A DNA stretch of 64,000 bases from Rebecca billardiae RCC1528. Its lineage: Eukaryota > Protista > Haptophyta. Shown here piece by piece: positions 44,723-56,695 of the stretch. A program made the position numbers and the translations under genes. The notes beneath the pieces are model-generated. The model was given only the letters and a program-made list of their open reading frames with translations. It was not told the DNA's origin and did not search any database. The stretch is taken from contig OZ251239.1 in assembly GCA_965240325.2 (NCBI GenBank), positions 1,364,001 to 1,428,000 of the forward strand, read 5' to 3'. How positions within the stretch are numbered: the first letter of the stretch is position 1; the number at the start of each line of letters is the position of its first letter.

Positions 44723-44871
44723 ATGCAGCCTCGCGGCGCCTCGCCCACGCCGGGCGAGGCGGACGACGCGAGCGAGCAGCCGGGCGCGGAGGGCGCGGAG
44801 CGCTCGGCCATGGAGCTCACGCCGCTCGCCGCGCCGTCCTCCTGGTCCGCCTGGTCCGGCTGGTCGATCTT

Positions 44872-44916
<45 letters not shown>

Positions 44917-46697
44917 GGACGAGGTGCCGAGCAACGACGCGTGGCGGCGCGAGCACGGGATCGACGAGCTGCTGGACGAGCCGCTCCCGCCCGCGCTGAG
45001 CGAGTGCTTCTTCCGCCACGGCACCGACCGCAACGCCACGCCGCTCTTTGTGTTCGAGCCGGGCCAGCTGCGAGACCCGGAGGAGGTGATTCGGCGCGAG
45101 GGCGCAGAGGCGTTCCACCGGTTCGCGCTGCGCTGCCTGGAGCACATGCGGCGCGACGCGGTGGCGGAGCGCGCGGGGCGCGTCGCGCTGCTCGTCGACA
45201 TGCACGCCACCTCGCTCCGCGCGCACTTCAAGCCCGCCGTGCTGCGCGCCCTCCACCGCGCGCTCATGGCGCGCTCGCACTTTATCGAGCCGCAGGCGCT
45301 TGCCGCGCGGCGCGCGGCGGGCGGCGCGGCGCCGGCGGGCGGCGGCGCGGCGGAGGGCGCGGCGGGCGGCGGGCCGCTGCCCACCGACCCCGCCTCGGGC
45401 GGCGGCATGCGCCTGCAGTACGTGCTGTTTGTGCGCGCGCCCTCCGGGCTGCCCCTGAGCAGAGAGCTGTCACCCTTCATTTCAGACTCGCCCTCCTGGT
45501 GAGGCACGCCCCCGCGGCGGCACTGCGGCGCGGGGGCGTGGCGGCCTGCCTGCTGGCCTGCGCGTGGGTGGGCGGGGCGGCGCCGCCGCGCCCCGCCGCC
45601 GCCAACGCCGCTGCCCACCCGCACACCCGCCCCCCCGCGCAGGTCTTTTGTCGTCGCGACCGACGACGAGACTGCGGGCACGCTCGCGCGCTATGTTTCG
45701 GCCGAGCACGTGCCGGCGCCGCTCGGCGGCGAGTGCGCGTGCTGCGTGCGCCGCGCGCACGCGCAGGCGGCGGAGGCGGTCGAGCGCCTCCTCAGCCCCG
45801 CGCTCCGCCCGAGCCCGTCCGAGCTGTGCGTGCGCAAGGTGATGCGCGCCGAGCCGGCGCTGTTTGAGGCCCAGGTGAGCGCACTGCGCGCGCGGCTGCT
45901 TGAGGAGGAGGCGCGCGCCGCGGTGGTGGCGGCGGGCGGCGGCGCGGGCGGCGGGCTGCCCGGCGCCGGCGCCGCCGCCGCCACCGTCTCCTCCGCCCTC
46001 GGCCTGCACTGGGGCTCCTCGCGGCGCAGCTCGGGCGGCGGCGCAGCGCTCGCCGAGCGCGGCGGCGGCGGCGGCGGCGGCGGCACGGCGGCGGCGGCGC
46101 CGCCGAGCCCGCGCGCCGCCGCGCTGCTCGCCGATGCGGCCCAGCGCGCGCTCGAGTCCAACCTGCTGCTGCGCGACGACTCGGCGCTGCGCCGCTTCGT
46201 GCTCGACTCGGGCGGGGATCTCGGCGCGGCCGCGACCGCGCTGCGCGCCACCCTCGCGTGGCGGCGCGAGTGGCGGGTCGACGGCCTACTGGAGGAGGAG
46301 GCGGGCTGGGCGGGCACGGGCGGGGGGGGCGGCGCGTATGCGAGCGCGCCGCCCGCCGCCCCCGCGGCCGGCGGCGGCGGCGGCTCGGCCGCGCGCGCGG
46401 CGCAGCTGGAGCTCCTCGAGGACTTCTGCTTCGTGCGCCACCGCACCGACCACCAGGGCCACCCGCTCTTCATGCTCCGCCTCGGCTTCCTGGCGGACGT
46501 GGAGGGCACAGCCCGCGCGCTCGGCGACCGCGCGACCGTGTTGTTTGGAGTGCGCTGCATCGAGCGCTGCGCGCGCGCGCTCGCGTCGGAGGCGGACGCG
46601 GAGCGCGCGGCGGGCTCGCCCGGCGGCGGCGAGGACGGCGGCGAGGCCGGCGCCGCCCGCGCCGCCTCGCCCTTTGAGCTCGAGCCGCGATCGCTCG

Positions 46698-46734
<37 letters not shown>

Positions 46735-47826
46735 TGCCGACGCGGACGTGTCAGCGGATGGCGGCCCGTTGGCGTACGCGCGCCGCGCCGCGCCCTCCGC
46801 GCGCCGCCCGCCGCCGCCGCCCGGCCGCGTCTCGCTCCTGATCGACCTGCACGGCGTGACCATCTCGCGCTTCGTCTTCTCCGCGTACCTGCTGCGCATC
46901 CTGCACGAGGTGATCGACATCGGCGACCGCCACTACCCGGCGATGCTGGCGCGCGTGCTCGTCGTGAACGCGCCCGCCTCGTTCCTCGCGCAGGCGTGGG
47001 GGGTGTTTTCGTACGCGCTGGGGGACGAGGCGCACCGCGCGGTGGTGGCGGTGGGCAGCGCGGAGCAGCTGCTCGCGCACGTGCCCAGGGCGTGCCTGCC
47101 GCGCGCGCTCGGCGGCCGCTGCACGTGCCAGGGCACGCGCTGCGTGCTCGACGTGGCGAGGCCGGCCGCGCTGCTCGTCGCCGACGCGGCGGGCGGCGCG
47201 GCGGGCGGCGCGGCGGGCGGCGGCGGCTCGCTCGGCGCGCTCGCCTCCGGGTTGAGCAGCGCGGGCAGCAGCCTGCACGCCGGCAGGCGGGGCGCGGGCG
47301 GCGGCGGTGGCGCGTGCGGCGGCGGCGGCTGTGCTCTCGGCGTGGGCGCGGGGGCGGGCGGCGTGGGCTGCGCGCCCGGCGCCGGGCTCAGCCTCGGCTC
47401 CTCCTCCACGTCCGTCGTCTCGGCAGCGGGCGTCGGCGGCGCCGCCGAGCCGAGCGCGGAGGGCGGGGCGCTGCTCGGTGGCGGCGGCAGCAGCAGCGCT
47501 CGCGCGTACGACGCGGTCAAGGCGGCGGCCGCGGCGGCGGGCGCGTCGGTCCGGGCGAAGGCGGTGGGCGGCACGCGCGCCGCCGCCGCCGCCGCCTCGG
47601 CCGCCGCCGCCGCTGCGAGCGCCCCCCCGCTGCCGCACGAGCAGCCGCTGCCTGCCGCGCTCACGGCGGACGCCGACGGCGCTGGGGGCGGCGGCGGCAG
47701 CAGCAGCGCCGTCAGCCCCCGGAGCGGCAGCGGCGGCTCGCGCCAGTCCTCGCCGGGCGGCGGCTTCTTCGGCGGCGGCGGAGACGGCGCTGCTGCCGGC
47801 GGCCCGCTCCGCCGAGGCTCAGCGGT

Positions 47827-47859
<33 letters not shown>

Positions 47860-48710
47860 GGGCGGCGGCGGCGGCGGCGGGCCGCACGCTCGAGGGCTGA
47901 CACTCGAGCTGGTCGAGCTGCAGCACGCGCCGAGGCGCATCTCGCGGCTGCTGCTCGACGCGGCGCACCGGCGCGGCCGCTCCGTCTCCTCGCTGCTCGT
48001 GCACTCGTGGCTCACGTCCTTTGGCGCGGGCGCGCCGCCGCACGGCGGCGGCGGCGGCGGCGGCGGCGCGGACGCGGGCGGCGGCGCGGACGCGAGCGTG
48101 GGCGGTCCGGCGGTGCGGGCGCAGCGCTCCTTCTCGCTGTCCAACGCGCTGGCGAGCGCGCTCTCCGGCGGCGGCGGCGGCTCGCCCGAGCGCCGGATGC
48201 CGCCGCGCACGCGCAGCTTCAGTGTGTCCACGCCGCGCGCGCGCGCGGGCGCGGGCGCGGGCGGCGGCGGCGCGCTCGGCGGCGGCGGCGCTGGCGGCGC
48301 GCGCGGCGGCGTGCGGCGCGCGCTGACGTGGGCGGCGGCGGCGCTGCGCGGCGGCGGCGGCGGCGGCGGCGGCCGCGCGCGCGCGCGCGCCGCCGCGCGC
48401 GCCGCCGCCGAGCAGCGCCGCCGCCAGTTCGCGCTGAGCATGCACGGCGCGGCCGCAGTTCTCCAGCTGCGCGCGCCCGGCGCGCGCGGCCGCGCCGCCG
48501 CCTCAGGGCCTGCCTCGGCCCAGTCTGACGACAGCGACGGCCTGCACACTCTGGTGGCGGCGCTGGCGCCGCAGCTCGCGGCGGTGGGCGTGAGCGTGGC
48601 CGAGGCGGGGCACGTGCCGCGGCGCGGGCTGTGGCTGCTGCTCGTGCACTACGCGCCGCCGCCGAGCACGGCACTCGCCCGGGGGGCGCTCGGCGCGGCC
48701 GCGGCGGCGC

Positions 48711-48753
<43 letters not shown>

Positions 48754-49349
48754 GGCCGGCGCGGCCGCGGACGCGGCGGCCATGCTGCACGCGCTGCGCG
48801 AGCGGCTGGAGGCGGCGCCGCTCTCGGCGGCGGCGGCGCAGACGTGCTCGCGCCTCGGGCTCGGCGGCGCGCGCCCGCCGCGCCCCGCCGCCGCCGCCCC
48901 CATCCCCGCAGCCATCGACACACCGCCCACGCTGCTCGGCGCGCTGCGCGCGACCGGTGCGCTCCGCGCCGCGCGGCCGCTGCACGCCGGGGCGCCGCTC
49001 AACGCGCTGCTGGGCGCGGGCAGCACGCCGATCCAGCGCTGGCTGGGGCGGCCGCCGAGCGCGGACGGCTGCGTGCTCGGCGGCATGCGCGCGTACGCCG
49101 GCCAGCGCGCGCCGCTCTGCCTCTGGGTGTGCGGCCGTGCGCTCGGCGCGCTCGCCTGGCCGTGCGCGGTTGCTGCGTGTCTAGACGGCGCGCGGCGCGC
49201 GCGCGCGGCCGCGCGCGCCGCGCGCGCCGCCGCGGCGCTCGGCGCGGCGGCGGGCGGCGAGGGGGCGGGGCCGGAGGGCGGCGTGGGCGCGGCGCTCGCG
49301 GCGTGGGCGCGCGCCGCCGCCGCTCTCCTCGGGGATGACGGCGGCGCGA

Positions 49350-49383
<34 letters not shown>

Positions 49384-50223
49384 TGGCGCGCGCGGAGGCG
49401 CGGCGGCCGCGGGCGGCGCGGCGCGCGGCGCGGCGCTCGGCGCGGCGGCGGGCGACCCGCCCGGCGCGCACGCGGCGGGCGCGGTGATGCTGCTCTGCGC
49501 GCTCCTCTACGGCGCCGCGCGCGCCGTGCTCAGCGCGGAGGCGGCGCGCGCGGCGCTCGCGCGCCGCGCGGCGCGCGAGCGGCGCGCGGCCGCGCGCGCC
49601 ACCGCCGGCGGCGCCTCCGCGGGGAGCGCGCCGCCGGTCGGCGCGGCCGAGGGCTCGCTGGCGTTCGGGCTGGCGTGGGCCGCGCTCGCGCTGCTGCTGA
49701 TCGGCGGCGCGGGCGGCGCCGCGTACGTCTTGCTCCGCGCGCACCTCCTCCTCGCGCGCGCGCTGGCGCTCGCGCCGCGGCTGAGCGCGCGCGCGAGCGC
49801 CGCGCGCGCCGCCGCGGCCGCGGGCGGCGCCGCGCTCGCGCCGACGAGCGCGGCGGGGGTGCGGCTGCAGCTGCTCGCGGCGCTGGCGCGGCTGGCGCGC
49901 CGCGGCGTGCGCGGGCTCGGCGTCGCCGCGTGCCGCGCCGCCGAGCTCACCACCTTCGCCGCCGCCACCGCCGCGCTCGGCGGCGCGAGCGCGCGCGCCG
50001 CGCGCGCCGCGTGCACCGCGCTCGCCGCCGCGGAGGCGCGCGCGGCCGGGCTCGTCTCGCGCTCGGCGTGCGACGAGGAGGAGCGCGCGCTGGGCGACGG
50101 GCGGTACCTGCTCGTGCGCGCGGGCGCGGTGCTCGCCGTCGCCCTCTGCGCGCCGCTCCACGCGCTGTGCTCGGGCGGCGGCGGTGCCGCCGCGCTCGGC
50201 GCCGCGCCGCCGGCCGGCGGCGC

Positions 50224-50259
<36 letters not shown>

Positions 50260-52408
50260 GGTGGGCGCCGAGCGGCGGCGGCTGGGCGCGGAGCTGAGCG
50301 CGCTCTTCGCGGCGCACTGCCTGAGCGCGCTCCTCTCGATGGTGAGCGCGCGCGTCGCCAGCGGCGCGGGCGCCGGCTCGGGCGCCGCCGCCGCGCGCTC
50401 GCGCGTCGTCTGTGCCGCCGACATGAAAGACGGCGGAGGCGGCGGCGGCGGAGCGATGCGGCGGAGCGGGTGCGCGTCGGCGGACGCGGACGCGGCGGCG
50501 GAGGCCGCGGCGGCGGCCGAGCTCACCACCACGCTCGCCTTCGCCTTCGCCGAGACCTCCGCCCCCGCGCACGACGCCTCGGCCGCCGCGGCAGACTGCG
50601 CGTGTCTCTGGGCGCTGGGCGGTTGCTTCGTGGCGCACAGGCCTGCGCTCGCGCTCGCCGCGGCGGTGGCGTCGCTCGTGCGGCTGCGGGCGGACTGGCT
50701 GCAGACGCTGCTGCTCTCGCGGCGCGGCTGGCCCGCCGGCGCGGGCGTGCTGCGCGCGCGCGGCGCGGACGCGGCGGACGGCGGCGGCGGCGGCGCGGGC
50801 GCGGCGGCGGCGCGCGAGCGCGCGCAGAGTGTAGGCGCGCCGCCGCCCGCGCCGCTCGGCGCGGCGGGCGAGGCGGAGGAGCGCTGGCTCGACGCGCGGC
50901 TGGGCAGCGCGGACGGCGCGGCGCGCGCGCACATCGCGCTGCTGCGTGCGCTCGGCGTGCTCGCCGTCGTCACCAACGCCGCGCTGCTGCTCCCCGCGGG
51001 GGCGGCGCGCGGCGCGGGCGGCGCGGGCGGCCGCGGCGGCGGCGCGCCGTCGGCCGGCGCGGGCGCGGCAGCAGCGCCGCCGCAGCCCGACGCCGCGTGC
51101 GAGCTCGCCGCCGCCGCCGCGACCACGCGCGCCGCGCTGCTGCTGGCCGCCGCGAGCGTCGGCGTCCTCGTCCTCTGCGGGCCACTCACGCAGCCGCCGC
51201 CGCCCGCGGGCGCGGCGGCGGGTTGGGCGGAGGGCGAGGCGGAGGAGGCCGACGAGGCTGAGAGGTGCACGCTGCTGGGCGCGCACCACGGCTGCTCCGC
51301 CGCGGCGGCGGGCGAGGTGAGCGCCCGGGCCCTCGCCGCGGAGGAGGCGCGGCAGTGGCTCTTCGGCAGCGGCGCGCCGCCGCAGAGCGCGCTCGCCATG
51401 CGCCGCGCGGCCGTGCGAGTGCTGCTGACTCCGTCGCTCGGCGCGCTCGGCGCGGCGGCGGACGGCGCGCACGCCGCGGCGCGCGGCGCGGCGGCGCACG
51501 TCACGCCGTTCGCCGCGCTCACGCTGCTCACCGTCGGCGCGGCGTGGGTCGCGGGCGCGCACGGCATGCACTTTGGCGTCGGCCTCTCGCTCGCCGCGCT
51601 GCTGCACGAGGCGCAGCGCGTGCGCGCGCGACAGGTGGCGTTGCGCGCGCACGCGGCGGCCACGCGCGAGGCGGACGCGCTGCGGGCGTTCGCGCGCGCG
51701 CACGCCGCGCCGCCGGCGCTGCTGTCCGCCGCCGACGCGAAGGCGGCCGCCGCGGCGGCGGGCGCGGCCGCGGCGCACGCCGCGGCGACGCGCGCCTTGG
51801 CGGAGGCGGCGAGCGGCGCCGCGGGCGCGCGCGACGGCGGCGGCGGCGGGTACGCGCCCGGCGGCGCGCCGAGCGGCCTGGGCGGCTCCGGCTGCGGCGG
51901 CAGCAGCTCGGCCGTCGTGCGCAAGGGGCCGAGCACCGGCTCCATCGCCGCGGCCAAGGCGGCCGCCTCCGCGGCGAAGGTGGCGACGGCGGTGGGCGCG
52001 CGCGCGGCGGCGGCGAGCGGCGCGGGCGCCGCGCGCGCCGCCACGGCACTGGACGGCCCGTGGCTGGGCGGCGAGCCGAGCGCGCCGCCGGCGAGGCCCA
52101 GCAGGGCGGCGTGCGCCGGCGGCGGCGCGGGCAGCAGCAGCGCGGCGAGCAACCGCCGGCGCTCCTTCTCCTCCGGGGACGTGCTGAGCGGCGCGGACGA
52201 GGCCGCCGCAGCCGCCACCGACGTGGCCAGCGCTCTGTCTGCCGCTGTCGCGAGCGCCGCGGCCGCCGCCGCCAGCTGCGCCGCGGCGGGCGGCTCGCTG
52301 CCGTCCACGCCCAAGCAGGGCGAGCGGCTGCTGCAGGTGCGGCTGAACGCGCCCCTCTCGACGCCGCCCACGCCCGACCCCGGCACGCCCACGCGCCACG
52401 CCGCTGCG

Positions 52409-52445
<37 letters not shown>

Positions 52446-52891
52446 AGCACGGCGGCGCGAGCCGGCGCGGCGGCGGGGCCGCGGCCGCGAGCGCGGCGGC
52501 CGCGCCGCCGCCGCCGCCGCCGATGACGACGACGGCGACGACGACGACAGCGGGCTCGTGCGGCGGCGGCGGGGTCGGCGGCGGCGCGGCGCCCGCCGCG
52601 CACGCCTCGCGCCGCTCCAGCCCGCCGCGCGAGCACCCCTCCGCCGCGGACGCGCCGCCGGCGGCCATTCTGTGCGCGGAGGGGGAGGCGGAGGCTGAGG
52701 GTGCGCAGCCCCCGCTGGATGCGGCGTGGGCGCACGTCGCGTGGCTGAGCGCGCTCGTGCGCACCATGTGGCCGGTGATCGCCGCGGACGTGTCGGAGCG
52801 GCTGCAGGAGGAGATCCAGGACGCGATCGAGAAGGCCATCCAGGCGGACGCGGAGGGCAAGGGCGTGGGCGCCGACAAGGGCGGAGGCGGA

Positions 52892-52926
<35 letters not shown>

Positions 52927-55151
52927 AGGTGGCGGCGGCGGTGGGAGTGGCGTCGATGGTGGCGGCGGCGGGGCCGGCGGCGGCGGGGGCAGCGGCCCGG
53001 CCACCGCGCCGCCCTCCTCCTCCTCGGGCCAGCCGACGATGCGCAACTTCAAGACGCGGCTCAACCTGGGCACGCACCCGCCTGCGTTCGAAGCGGTGCG
53101 GCTAGCCACGCCCTCGGCGGCGCTGCGCGGCGTGCCGCACGCGTTCTGCGCGGAGGCGCGCGTGCACTGGGCGTCCGACGCGTCGCTGGTGGTGACCGCC
53201 GACGTGGGCCGCCGCCTCCTCTCCTTCTCCGTCTCCTTCGCGCTGCGCTCGATCGCGCTGCGCGGCGTGCTGCGTGTCGAAGGCGTTCCGCGACCCGCGC
53301 CGCCCTACCTCGGGAGGCTTCGACTTTCCTTCCAGGAGAGCCCGCACGTGATCTTCGAGCTCAAGGCGCTGGACACGCTGGACATCATGGAGTTCCCGTT
53401 CCTCGAGCGGTACATCTCCACCTTCTTCCGGCAGAACCTCTTCGCCGAGATCACCGCGCCCAACGCCGCCGAGTTTGAGCTGCACGAGGTGAGCCGCACC
53501 GCACCGCACCGCACCGCACAGCACCGCACAGCACCGCACAGCACAGCACAGCACAGCGCACAGCGCACAGCGCAGCACAGCACAGCGCAGCGCACAGCGC
53601 TGAGTGCCGAGCGTTCCGCACCGCGTCAGTGGCCCCCGCCCGCCCGCCTGAGCCCCCGCGCGCGCTCCCGCCCCGCGCTGGCCCGCGCGCCCCCCTCGCA
53701 CGCCCCCGCAGGTCATCGGCGCCGCCCAGCCGCACCTGCTCACGCTGCACCTGCGCTCAGCCGCACCACAGTGGCTCGCGGCCGCGGCCGACGGCACGGG
53801 CGTGGGCGCGCGCCGCACGCTGCGGCTGGTGGCGTCGCTCTCCGAGGTGGCGTACAAGGTGCACGAGGCCACGACGGAGGGCGTGCTCTGGACAGCGCCC
53901 GCCAGCGGGGGCGGCGGCGGCGCGTCGTCCGAGCCCGGCGGCGCGTCCGCGCCGCCGCCCGTCTCGTGGGAGGAGTGGGTGACGATGCCGGTGGTCGAAC
54001 CGGAGCGCACGCAGCTTGTGCTCAGCCTACAGGCGAGGGACGAGGTGGGCGGGTATGCGCAGCTGGCGAGCGCGACGCTGCCGCTGATCGGCGGGGACAA
54101 GCGGCGCGGCGGCGGCGGTGGAGGCGGCGGCGGCGGTGGCAGCGGCGGCGGCGGCGCGGCCAAGGCGGCCGCGAGCGGCGCCGCGGCGGCGCGCGCGGCC
54201 GCGGCGCTGAGCGCGGGCGCGGCCGCCGCCGCCGCCGCAGCCGCCGCAGCCGCGGACGCGGCCGCCGCGGCGCGCGCGCTCTGGGGCCCGCCGCTGCTGC
54301 CGGACGCGCGCGTGCTGCTGCCCTCGCCGAGCGGGGAGCGGATGCGCTCGGTGCGCGTCTTCATGCGGCCGACGCAGCCGACGCCCGCGGCCGCCGCCAC
54401 CGCCGCCGCGGCCGCGGCCGCGGCGGCCGCCGCGGCCGGCGGCGCCGCCGCCCTCTCCGCCGCGGCCGCGGCCGCGCCGCCGCCGCCGGACCAGCCAGGC
54501 TGGTGGCTCAGCCTCGGCGTGCAGATGTCGCGCCCGCCCGCGCCCGCGACCGCGGCTTTGCGCGCGCTCGGCCCTCTGCAGCTGCACGTCGGTGGGCTGC
54601 AGCTGCACGGCGTAAGTCCGGGCTCTCTGCTCTGCCTGGAGGTGCGGCTGGGAGGGAGGCGCGCGCCGACGCGCGCGATCACCGCGTCCGAGGCGGAGCG
54701 CTGCGTGTGGCGCGACTTCAGCGCGACGCTCGACGCGCGCAAGCCGCACGCGCAGCGGCTCACCGTCGCGCTGCTCGCGCCGCGCACCGCGCGCGCGCCG
54801 CCGCGCGGCACCGTGGGAGCCGCCGCGGCGCTCGGCGCGTCGCCGCCCGCCGGCTCGCCCGCCGGTCGCGCGGGCGGCGGCGCCGCCGCGCCGGGCGCCG
54901 AGGGCGCCGAGCTCGGCACGGCCACGCTCGACCTGCGCGAGCTCGGCGTGGGCGCCACCGAGGTGCGATGGCTGCCGATCCGGCTCGCGGACTCGGCGGA
55001 GGATGAGCCGGGCGGCGCGGCCGCGGTCGTGCGCGCCGAGCTGACGCTCTTCAAGCCGGGCGCGGCCGGGGGCGGCGCGGGCGGCGGCGCGGGTGGCGGC
55101 ACGGGCGGCGCGGGTGGCGGTGACCACCAGGCCGCGGGTGGCGCCGGCTGA
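44723..55151 (+). CDS. ~3350-aa fusion: 2x CRAL-TRIO/Sec14, degenerate anoctamin/TMEM16-like region, SMP domain, C2-like domains; 3 exons
   Basis: Introns 45499-45642 and 53489-53711 are phase-consistent. Sec14 motifs: AWRREHGIDELL, GTDRNATPL, HYPAMLARVLVVNAP, CLPRALGG. SMP motifs: WLSALVRTMWP, LNLGTHPPAF, LSFQESP, DIMEFPFL. C2-like beta-strand segments lie in exon 3. Confidence 0.8.
53495..53600 (+). repeat. Intronic pentanucleotide repeat (GCACC/GCACA)n
   Basis: Seen directly within intron 53489-53711. Confidence 0.85.
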
Positions 55152-55507
55152 GGAAGCCGCCCCGCCCTGCTGACAATCATCATGGCCGCGCGAGCTAGAG
55201 TTGCACTACGACGGACTGCGACTACGCGATATGAGCGACGATGTTTAGCGATGCTGCGACGCAGCATGACTCGACGATACATCATGCTTGGCGGAGCGTA
55301 CTCTCGACGGTGCTCCCGACCGTGGTCTCCCGCTCGAGCGGCTGCCTGGTGGGCCCTGAGGCCAGCCCGACCCATCGGCGGGACGGCGGCCATCGTCAAT
55401 CGTCATCGTCGTCATTTTCCGTTTTTGCGTCATCATCATCGCAATTTATTTCAACGGAGTCCCTTTCGAGTAGCACGGCATACACTGCGTGGCTGACGCG
55501 CGCGAGG

Positions 55508-56695
55508 ATGCCCAGCATGTGCGGCCGAGCTGGCTGTGACAAGCGCGCGATATATGGCAAGCCGGGTACACGTGCCAGCCTCTGCGCTGCTCACAAGCTG
55601 GCCGGCATGGTGGACGTGAAGAGCCGCAGGTGCGAGCATGCCGGCTGTGACAAGCAGCCGTACTTTGGCATGCCGGGCGACACACGTGCCAGCCGCTGCG
55701 CCACACACAAGCTGGCCGGCATGGTGAACGTGAAGAACCGCAGGTGCGAGCATGCCGGCTGCCACAAACAGCCGTACTTTGGCATGCCGGGCGACACACG
55801 TGCCAGCCACTGCGCCACACACAAGCTGGCCGGCATGGTGGACGTGAAGAACCGAAGGTGCGAGCATGCCGGCTGTGACAAGCATCCTAACTATGGCACG
55901 CCGGGTGACACATGTCTCCGTCGCTGCGCTGTGCACAAGCTGGGTGGCATGATCAGCATGCGCGCCATGCGCGAGCGCAAGCGGGCTGCAGCCCCTGAGC
56001 CTCAGCAGGGCGGCAGCGCAAAGCGCAGGCGCGTGCAGCGGAACGGTGGCGGCACGGCTGCAGCAGCTGCCGCTGCTGCCAGCTCGCAGCCGCAGCCGCA
56101 GCCACCGAGGGCCACGGGTCGCGCTGAGGCTCACCCACCGCGTCGCCCCGCTGTCGCGAGCGGCAGCGGCCCGCGCAGCCGCGGCGATGGGCCGGGCAAG
56201 CGCGCGGGGCCGAGCAGGGCGCATGCAGCGCATACACAGCCCGCCCTGGGCACTGCCCCGCCTGCTGATGGGCCAGGCGGTGGAGGTGGCGGGGAGCATG
56301 CGGCAGATGCCCCGCTGCTCGGCCGGCTGGTCGAGCCCGCCGCGTCCACGCAGCACACCGACGCTGCTGCCGAGCTCGCCGCCGAGCGCGCCGCCACCGA
56401 GCGCATGCGCGCCGAGCTCGTGCGCGCGCGCATGCGGCTGCGTCTCGCCGAGCAGGCGGCCGACCCGTCGCACCTGCGCGTGCTGCGCTTGGTCATGGAG
56501 GGCGAGGCCGAGCCCGCGGGCGCCCAGCCGCGCGTTGGCGCACGCTCCAGTCCCGCGGCACAAGCTGATTCTGAGGACGAGCGCCATGCCACGCTGCAGT
56601 ACCTGCGCGAGCTCGAGGCGCGGGTGCGCGAGCCAGCAGGCGAGCAGCGACGTCGCGCGACGGCGTCGTCCGATTATTCCGCCGGCCGCGCGTGA
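55508..56695 (+). CDS. EsV-1-7-type Cys/His repeat protein, copy E (4 repeats)
   Basis: Same architecture and family leader. Confidence 0.85.

Follow-up and report, generated by a model that had tools for sequence, protein, structure and literature searches.

We find that one very GC-rich algal gene is a single reading frame with two Sec14-type lipid-carrier domains and one SMP-type lipid-carrier domain. The predicted product has about 3,350 residues, some half of which belong to Ala/Gly-rich linkers, and it combines known parts in a new domain architecture. The arrangement that an earlier note on this DNA had proposed, Sec14-Sec14, then a membrane region, then SMP in a single polypeptide, finds support both in the sequence and in Pfam. 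Moreover, our analysis suggests that the membrane region probably descends, with strong divergence, from the anoctamin/TMEM16 family of lipid scramblases; the lines of support for this descent are concordant, and each is weak on its own.

Reading frame and carrier domains

The gene lies on the + strand and comprises three exons with 3353 codons, GT..AG introns and compatible phases (Table 1; the window is the whole 64-kb stretch of DNA that was analysed, and positions are counted from its first letter). The frame is kept across the exons: the 776+7846 nt of exons 1 and 2 are a multiple of 3, exon 3 begins in phase 0, and removal of intron 1 puts the tail of the first CRAL-TRIO domain back in frame. 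Codon periodicity, followed through third-position GC (GC3), begins at about 44700, at exon 1, and in 300-nt windows taken between 44810 and about 53500 GC3 is always 0.91-1.00 in one frame. Apart from the two introns, the periodicity fails only where pure GGC/CGG triplets follow one another and G or C fills every codon position. Since GC3 collapses in both recognised introns, non-coding DNA is recognisable at this locus. The frame 45710..55006 is open, and because the long second exon is free of stops and its third-codon GC is constant in one frame, a single coding exon does hold the SMP domain together with the second CRAL-TRIO, as had been claimed of this 7.8-kb stretch. Expansion of (GCN)n/(GGC)n triplet repeats is heavy throughout the gene.

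Two antisense open frames, of 1,298 and 1,200 codons (49181..53077 and 49507..53109), overlap the gene. We rejected them as genes, since GC is distributed over the codon positions as expected for the + frame, and we attribute their openness to GC content. For the downstream gene, an exact-product look-up found no record.

Table 1. Features of the gene and its predicted product (positions in the window).
Feature	Position	Strand	Remarks
Exon 1	44723..45498	+	start codon, Gly run, N-terminal two thirds of CRAL-TRIO domain 1; GTGAGG donor at 45499
Intron 1	45499..45642	+	144 nt, GT..AG; codon periodicity lost; in-frame stop at donor
Exon 2	45643..53488	+	7,846 nt, 2,615 codons, stop-free; AG acceptor, GTGAGC donor
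CRAL-TRIO domain 2	46163..47116	+	PF00650 49.9 bits (cut-off 22.6), E 3.8e-13, two stretches
Candidate TMEM16/anoctamin-like membrane module	49085..51187	+	about ten hydrophobic segments, Ala/Gly-rich loops between
Motif 1 (pre-TM1-like, R-x-Y-x-G-Q-R)	49085..49129	+	at chance level
Motif 2 (alpha7/alpha8-like, F-V-A-x-x-P ... R-x-D ... R-R)	50624..50743	+	Pfam Anoctamin stretch
Motif 3 (L-A-V-V-T-N-A)	50951..50989	+	
Extra hydrophobic segment	51500..51604	+	about 35 residues, Gly/His centre; hydropathy only
SMP (TULIP) lipid-transfer domain	52712..53488	+	PF25669 SMP_MUG190-like, 36.2 bits (cut-off 35), E 6.1e-9
Intron 2	53489..53711	+	223 nt, GT..AG; (GCACA)n microsatellite at 53494-53591
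Exon 3	53712..55151	+	479 codons + stop; coding periodicity in shifted frame

Both of the Sec14 domains that had been claimed are recovered by PF00650 above its gathering score. The first scores 25.9 bits against the cut-off of 22.6, with its Pfam stretch at about 45002-45232, while the second is divided by a Gly/Asp low-complexity insertion and has its best Pfam stretch at 46823-47116. The SMP domain was also read correctly, with a small margin over the Pfam cut-off: PF25669 matches in two collinear stretches (profile 3-37 and 123-218), PF17047 SMP_LBD gives a weak match on the N-terminal helix, and the domain is broken up at 52880-52996 by a run of Gly codons, (GGC)39. When the SMP piece was compared with PDB sequences by phmmer, the matches were to Gly linkers only. 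The hydrophobic segment at 51500..51604 could be a membrane hairpin before SMP, as in E-Syt/tricalbins.

The C2 domain that the earlier note had added to this list was not confirmed. In the product of exon 3, poly-Ala separates two stretches that are beta-rich and C2-like (about 53712-54090 and 54531-55097), and neither the exon nor four sub-pieces of it gave any Pfam match at E<=10, C2 (PF00168) included. Against PDB sequences exon 3 found no informative match, and the AlphaFold model of this part, computed without an alignment, has a pLDDT of 38.8 and is unusable.

The membrane module and the TMEM16 family

The central region consists of 35% Ala and 15% Gly, which makes hydropathy unreliable there; it allows about ten hydrophobic segments from motif 1 to 51187, and the TMEM16 fold has ten helices. 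A feature search of the ESM Atlas with an 801-residue region returned PF04547 clusters for all listed matches (0.90, 196/256 shared), and so did a search with the first 500 residues, from which motifs 2 and 3 are absent (0.87, 180/256 among the listed matches). The clusters come from several eukaryotic phyla and have a fitting length. By the tool's own calibration such feature neighbours are a lead and not proof: the recognition value of 1762 is below the level that the tool treats as strong evidence, and ten matches of one family were obtained for a third of shuffled proteins too.

The Pfam Anoctamin profile reaches 11.2-12.4 bits (E 0.07-0.17), where the cut-off is 28, and this match covers profile positions 341-380 of 460 and falls exactly on motif 2. 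It is the best or second-best weak match, it stands at the expected position in the profile, and it appears only for pieces that include motif 3 too. Next to it, on a stretch that overlaps it in part, an unrelated family, DUF2484, scores equally; taken alone, the Pfam match is therefore at noise level. Over the whole of 49085..51187 Pfam found no match. No other anoctamin match came from tiling, whether in 120-residue tiles or in pieces placed to cover motif 1, the N-terminal cytosolic part and the putative last helices. The phmmer searches against PDB returned no TMEM16 chain at E<=10. The fold searches, with Foldseek in PDB and by shape in the Atlas, found nothing meaningful; they are uninformative because the AlphaFold model of the central region, made without an alignment, reaches a pLDDT of only 42.5.

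Homologues were equally elusive. Among 1.84 billion representative proteins, phmmer with residues 1100-1990 of the open frame gave zero matches; word-index searches with the central region, the SMP region and CRAL-TRIO 2 gave none, the first two being swamped by low-complexity words; and no related locus was seen in viral and metagenome contigs.

The earlier note had pointed to three motifs in anoctamin order. They are present at 49085, 50627 and 50951, in the right order and frame, but motif 1 is at chance level. We scored the motifs ungapped with BLOSUM62 on the consensus given in that note, against 3000 shuffles of exon 2. For motif 1, 9-15% of shuffles reach its score, which is not significant, and this site is not the top match when all 64 kb are read in six frames. 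The score of motif 2 is reached by 0.3-0.4% of the 3000 shuffles and that of motif 3 by none (z about 7), and no shuffle reaches all three together. The same six-frame comparison puts these two sites first in the window for motifs 2 and 3 (31 vs 22 for motif 3); they are collinear and 108 residues apart. By analogy with TMEM16A, motif 3 would be alpha9-like.

Within motif 2, N-N-x-x-E is replaced by A-S-L-V-R on the same consensus, which bears out the suggestion that its acidic residue is lost; the aspartate of the neighbouring R-x-D is retained. When the acidic/Asn Ca2+-binding residues on alpha6-alpha8 are mapped by analogy with TMEM16A, most of them are probably lost. A missing Ca2+ site does not exclude membership of the TMEM16 family, since IST2 is without it too (PMC12618243). 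In favour of the proposal that the region is TMEM16-like are the anoctamin clusters, the sole family among the listed Atlas matches, the above-chance motifs 2 and 3 and the weak collinear Pfam match; against it, the Pfam score lies below the cut-off, and no HMMER homologue emerged from PDB or the databases.

Competing explanations and proposed role

Could the central region have nothing to do with anoctamins? It might be a lineage-specific, Ala-rich polytopic or hairpin anchor with disordered linkers, in an E-Syt/tricalbin-type tether that gained two N-terminal Sec14 domains; the resemblance would then lie in a few motifs arisen by chance, on which the earlier note and a language model both seized. 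Such an origin would sit well with the lack of HMMER-level similarity to any TMEM16, with a noise-level Pfam score for which a spurious DUF2484 competes, with the failure of motif 1, with the low Atlas recognition and its behaviour on shuffled proteins, and with the hazards of hydropathy at this composition. However, it would leave unexplained why feature searches on two different spans give anoctamin clusters only, from many phyla, why motifs 2 and 3 stand so far above the shuffles in collinear positions, and why the earlier note, Pfam and the Atlas converge on the same single family. We consider an unrelated anchor unlikely, though by no means negligible. It is very improbable, in our view, that the module is instead the decaying remnant of a former anoctamin fusion, drifting under triplet-repeat expansion and retained only as spacer or anchor, neither scrambling lipid nor acting as a channel. 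The heavy repeats, the vanished N-N-x-x-E residues and a divergence so extreme that no homologue is detectable are what one would expect of decay, but 7.8 kb with intact frame and codon bias are not, and IST2 scrambles constitutively despite loss of its Ca2+ site (PMC12618243).

The gene model itself could be wrong if, through internal transcription starts or unrecognised in-frame introns, the Sec14, membrane and SMP parts were made as proteins of their own, or if the protein were much shorter. The word-index searches found no orthologue of comparable length, and GC-rich DNA keeps frames open by chance, as the two antisense frames illustrate. Yet no in-frame stop codon occurs over 7.8 kb, although a separate upstream gene would have to end in one, the high GC3 keeps to one frame and collapses in two introns, and the exon phases fit. 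We therefore regard an error of this kind as improbable.

The explanation that we favour, with fair rather than high confidence, is a single three-exon gene for Sec14-Sec14, an anoctamin-derived membrane module, a hairpin, SMP and a beta-rich tail. In such a protein two cytosolic CRAL-TRIO domains would be followed by a diverged polytopic module, probably of TMEM16/anoctamin descent and with most Ca2+-binding residues lost, then by the hydrophobic hairpin, SMP and a tail that may be C2-like. The membrane module would be the ER anchor of the protein, and the carrier domains would reach a second membrane via the long disordered linkers. Upon removal or delivery of lipid the anoctamin-like module might re-equilibrate the leaflets, as Ist2 does for Osh6; alternatively, it might act as an anchor and dimerisation unit only. 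We infer the topology, the contact-site location and any scrambling from the domain content, and scramblase function and Ca-independence are likewise putative. That the protein is an active Ca2+-independent TMEM16-type scramblase, fused covalently to two Sec14 and one SMP shuttle carriers as a natural 'Ist2-Osh6 in cis', is a tentative idea that we hold to be possible but doubtful.

The way in which lipid transfer by carriers is tied to leaflet equilibration is a topical question, and Ist2-Osh6 was resolved only in 2025. If carriers and a TMEM16-like module are indeed fused here, this would be independent evolutionary evidence for such coupling and would extend it to Sec14 and SMP carriers. 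If moreover the scramblase is active, the protein would be a Rosetta-stone fusion and would argue for a general need of shuttle-type transfer at contact sites for a dedicated scramblase. We found no paper in the literature with the combination of two Sec14 domains, an anoctamin-like region and SMP. The anoctamin part aside, the reviews consulted do not list Sec14 together with SMP within one membrane protein, and CRAL-TRIO with SMP is absent among the multi-carrier combinations in section 4.7 of PMC5507252.

Comparison with known systems

More than one lipid-transfer superfamily per polypeptide is known from Sec14-like 1/5, which combine CRAL-TRIO and PRELI (PMC5507252); unlike the present protein, they have no polytopic membrane module. 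Extended synaptotagmins, tricalbins and plant SYT and NTMC2 consist of an N-terminal membrane hairpin, SMP and then C2 domains binding the target membrane. With them the algal protein would share a hydrophobic hairpin-like segment (by hydropathy only), an SMP domain above the Pfam cut-off and beta-rich C2-like stretches. It differs from E-Syt-type proteins in that C2 is undetectable by Pfam, SMP is of the MUG190-like subtype, and about 2,300 additional residues, with two Sec14 domains and the polytopic module, lie N-terminal to the hairpin.

The logic of lipid transfer coupled to leaflet equilibration would be that of VPS13-XK and ATG2-ATG9, in which bridge-type transfer proteins are paired with scramblases (bioRxiv 10.64898/2026.01.07.698282; PMC11893163). 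There, however, carrier and scramblase are not joined in one protein, the carriers are bridge-like and the scramblases are unrelated. The closest analogue is yeast Ist2-Osh6, which here is apparently fused in cis. IST2, in the ER, is a TMEM16-family scramblase without a Ca2+ site; it acts constitutively, carries a long disordered tether and cooperates with a soluble lipid carrier at membrane contacts (PMC12618243, PMC12617493). The algal protein would resemble this pair in its shuttle-type carriers, its very long disordered regions and a membrane module, probably of TMEM16 type, without the canonical Ca2+ site. In yeast an ORP-family protein is the carrier, made separately and bound to the tether, whereas here the carriers are CRAL-TRIO and SMP domains, covalently attached on both sides of the membrane module.

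Reading frame and exon structure

The coding frame of the gene is settled by codon-position GC. The GC content across the gene is 0.75-0.87, and because the window is extremely GC-rich, long open frames occur by chance on both strands, so that openness alone is no proof of coding. From ~44810 to ~53500, third-position GC is 0.91-1.00 in one single frame in every 300-nt window, and the second codon position has the lowest GC in most of them; past 53500 the signal shifts to the frame one base over. At 150-nt resolution, codon periodicity breaks down at just two places, 45450-45749 and 53400-53774, each flanked by canonical splice signals. The other brief apparent phase switches lie at pure GGC/CGG triplet arrays, in which all three codon positions are G or C.

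The resulting three-exon model totals 10,062 nt and 3,353 residues with compatible exon phases, and with intron 1 spliced out, the first CRAL-TRIO (Sec14-type) domain regains its C-terminal part. As the earlier note had proposed, the second CRAL-TRIO domain and the SMP domain are indeed linked by one coding exon, free of stops and in one GC-periodic frame. A separate upstream gene is not supported, since it would need a stop codon and none is present. Exon 3 is coding by codon periodicity; the raw open frame extends to 55006 because the microsatellite that occupies most of intron 2 stays open in the exon 2 frame. We rejected as genes two antisense frames of 1,298 and 1,200 codons, as codon-position GC fits the plus-strand frame; at 85% GC, long antisense frames over the gene arise as a side effect. 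So far, one genome is known to carry the gene.

Features of the gene and its surroundings (window positions)
Feature	Position	Strand	Remarks
Exon 1	44723-45498	+	with start codon
Intron 1	45499-45642	+	GTGAGG donor at 45499; AG acceptor ending 45642
Exon 2	45643-53488	+	7,846 nt, stop-free
Intron 2	53489-53711	+	GTGAGC donor at 53489; AG acceptor ending 53711
Microsatellite	53494-53591		(GCACA)n / 10-nt, ~19 copies
Exon 3	53712-55151	+	stop codon included
GGC/GCG arrays (examples)	44873-44915, 47828-47880, 48260-48377, 52880-52996, and others		Gly/Ala runs
Central region	~49085-51187	+	candidate membrane module
Motif 1	49085	+	score 18; reached by 9-15% of shuffles
Motif 2	50624-50743	+	score 32; reached by 0.3-0.4% of shuffles
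Motif 3	50951	+	score 31; reached by no shuffle (mean 16.4, sd 2)
Hydrophobic segment	51500-51604	+	~35 residues, Gly/His centre
SMP match	52712-53479	+	PF25669
Rejected frames	49181-53077, 49507-53109	-
EsV-1-7 frame	55241-56692	+	~90 nt past the stop codon
33-residue peptide	29849 (+), 39344 (-), 55768 (-)		near-identical, in translated frames

Lipid-carrier domains, exon 3 and the neighbouring gene

Database searches were run exon by exon. The two Sec14 domains and one SMP domain claimed from the sequence all exceed their Pfam cut-offs, and as sequence matches we regard them as solid. CRAL-TRIO 1 on exon 1 scores 25.9 bits against a cut-off of 22.6, and CRAL-TRIO 2, at the beginning of exon 2, 49.9 bits (E 3.8e-13) in two stretches parted by a Gly/Asp insertion. 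The SMP domain matches PF25669 (MUG190-like SMP) at 36.2 bits (E 6.1e-9), slightly above the cut-off of 35, in two collinear stretches (profile positions 3-37 and 123-218) with a (GGC)39 glycine run between them, and a second SMP family, PF17047, weakly matches its first helix. In-frame GGC/GCG arrays, the longest with 39 copies, are numerous and encode stretches of Gly or Ala; several sit within folded domains (CRAL-TRIO 2, SMP). Such domain-splitting low-complexity insertions seem to be tolerated in Rebecca billardiae RCC1528, and they lower profile scores.

The C2 domain also claimed found no such backing: Pfam gave zero matches at E<=10 on the whole of exon 3 and on four sub-pieces, a PDB sequence search with exon 3 gave no informative match, and the AlphaFold single-sequence model (pLDDT 38.8) is unusable. 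Two stretches show, by eye, beta-sandwich-like alternation, and a C2 domain here is a putative, unverified reading.

The open frame that follows the gene scores highly in Pfam for EsV-1-7 cysteine-rich repeats, of which it has at least 4 (PF19114, E 4.3e-53); the gene-position collection holds no record of its exact product. One copy of the 33-residue peptide, that at 55768, is antisense to this gene, and the copies suggest that the EsV-1-7 gene may be part of a repeated gene family at 28-43 kb.

A probable anoctamin-like central region

Between CRAL-TRIO 2 and SMP, the earlier note had read a TMEM16-like membrane region from three anoctamin motifs. We scored its three consensus strings by ungapped BLOSUM62 on exon 2 against 3000 global or block shuffles. 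Motifs 2 and 3, which lie in the same frame 108 residues apart, exceed the shuffles and are the top matches in all six frames of the window (~128,000 residues), whereas the motif 1 site is not the top match and its score is at chance level; all three scores together were reached in 0/3000.

An ESM-Atlas feature search with open-frame residues 1100-1900 returned, among the matches listed, only clusters of PF04547 (Pfam Anoctamin), from chordates, fungi and oomycetes (best match 0.90, 196/256 features shared). The first 500 residues of the searched region, which exclude motifs 2 and 3, likewise gave only anoctamin clusters among the matches listed (fragments of 280-437 residues, 0.87, 180 features shared). 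The ten best family hits for residues 1100-1900 all concur, but calibration of the search calls for caution: the recognition value (1762) is low, and for one third of shuffled proteins, too, ten hits come from a single family. Even so, chance alone gives no reason for a match to fall twice on the family already named from motifs. In Pfam, Anoctamin is the best or second-best family on pieces 50537-51019, 50597-51046 and 50477-51136 (11.2-12.4 bits, E 0.07-0.17), invariably at profile positions 341-380 of 460 over motif 2, and only when motif 3 is in the piece; the match is lost if the piece stops before or within motif 3. It thus appears collinear with the family, yet is at noise level, and DUF2484, surely spurious, scores equally on an adjoining, partly overlapping stretch.

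Against this evidence stand the other searches. The central region (35% Ala, 15% Gly) as a whole matched no Pfam family, phmmer searches of PDB sequences with the region and motif pieces turned up no chain of a TMEM16 protein at E<=10, and when 891 residues were compared exhaustively by phmmer with 1.84 billion representatives, there was no match at E<=0.001, orthologues included. Word-index searches with the central region, SMP region and CRAL-TRIO 2 found no relative, and scans of viral and metagenome contigs found no related locus. The alignment-free AlphaFold model has a pLDDT of 42.5, and fold searches on it were empty or meaningless. In favour of the reading, hydropathy, unreliable in Ala-rich sequence, gives about ten possible membrane segments in the region and a further one beyond it. 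On balance, this is probably a membrane module of anoctamin ancestry, with family scores below the Pfam cut-off. Set against the consensus of the earlier note, NNxxE reads A-S-L-V-R, its acidic residue being lost as had been noted, while the R-x-D aspartate is retained; a mapping of the remaining Ca2+ ligands on those of mouse TMEM16A is tentative.

Proposed arrangement and comparison with yeast IST2

All component parts of the gene are of known kinds. A full-text literature search found no paper with anoctamin and SMP or CRAL-TRIO in one protein, and a TULIP review's list of multi-lipid-transfer-domain proteins has no case of SMP with CRAL-TRIO (PMC5507252). Judging from hydropathy, a TMEM16 module with both ends cytosolic would be followed by an E-Syt-like hairpin, which would leave all carrier domains cytosolic.

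The best functional analogue would be yeast IST2, whose membrane domain is a constitutively active scramblase, a TMEM16 homologue in which the conserved Ca2+ site is missing. The C-terminus of IST2, long and disordered, links the ER with the plasma membrane and binds the carrier OSH6, and scrambling sustains OSH6-mediated transfer (PMC12618243, PMC12617493). The putative algal module may either scramble or serve only as an anchor. The algal protein apparently follows the same logic as IST2-OSH6 but in one chain, and its carriers are Sec14 and SMP domains whereas that of the IST2 system is an ORP.
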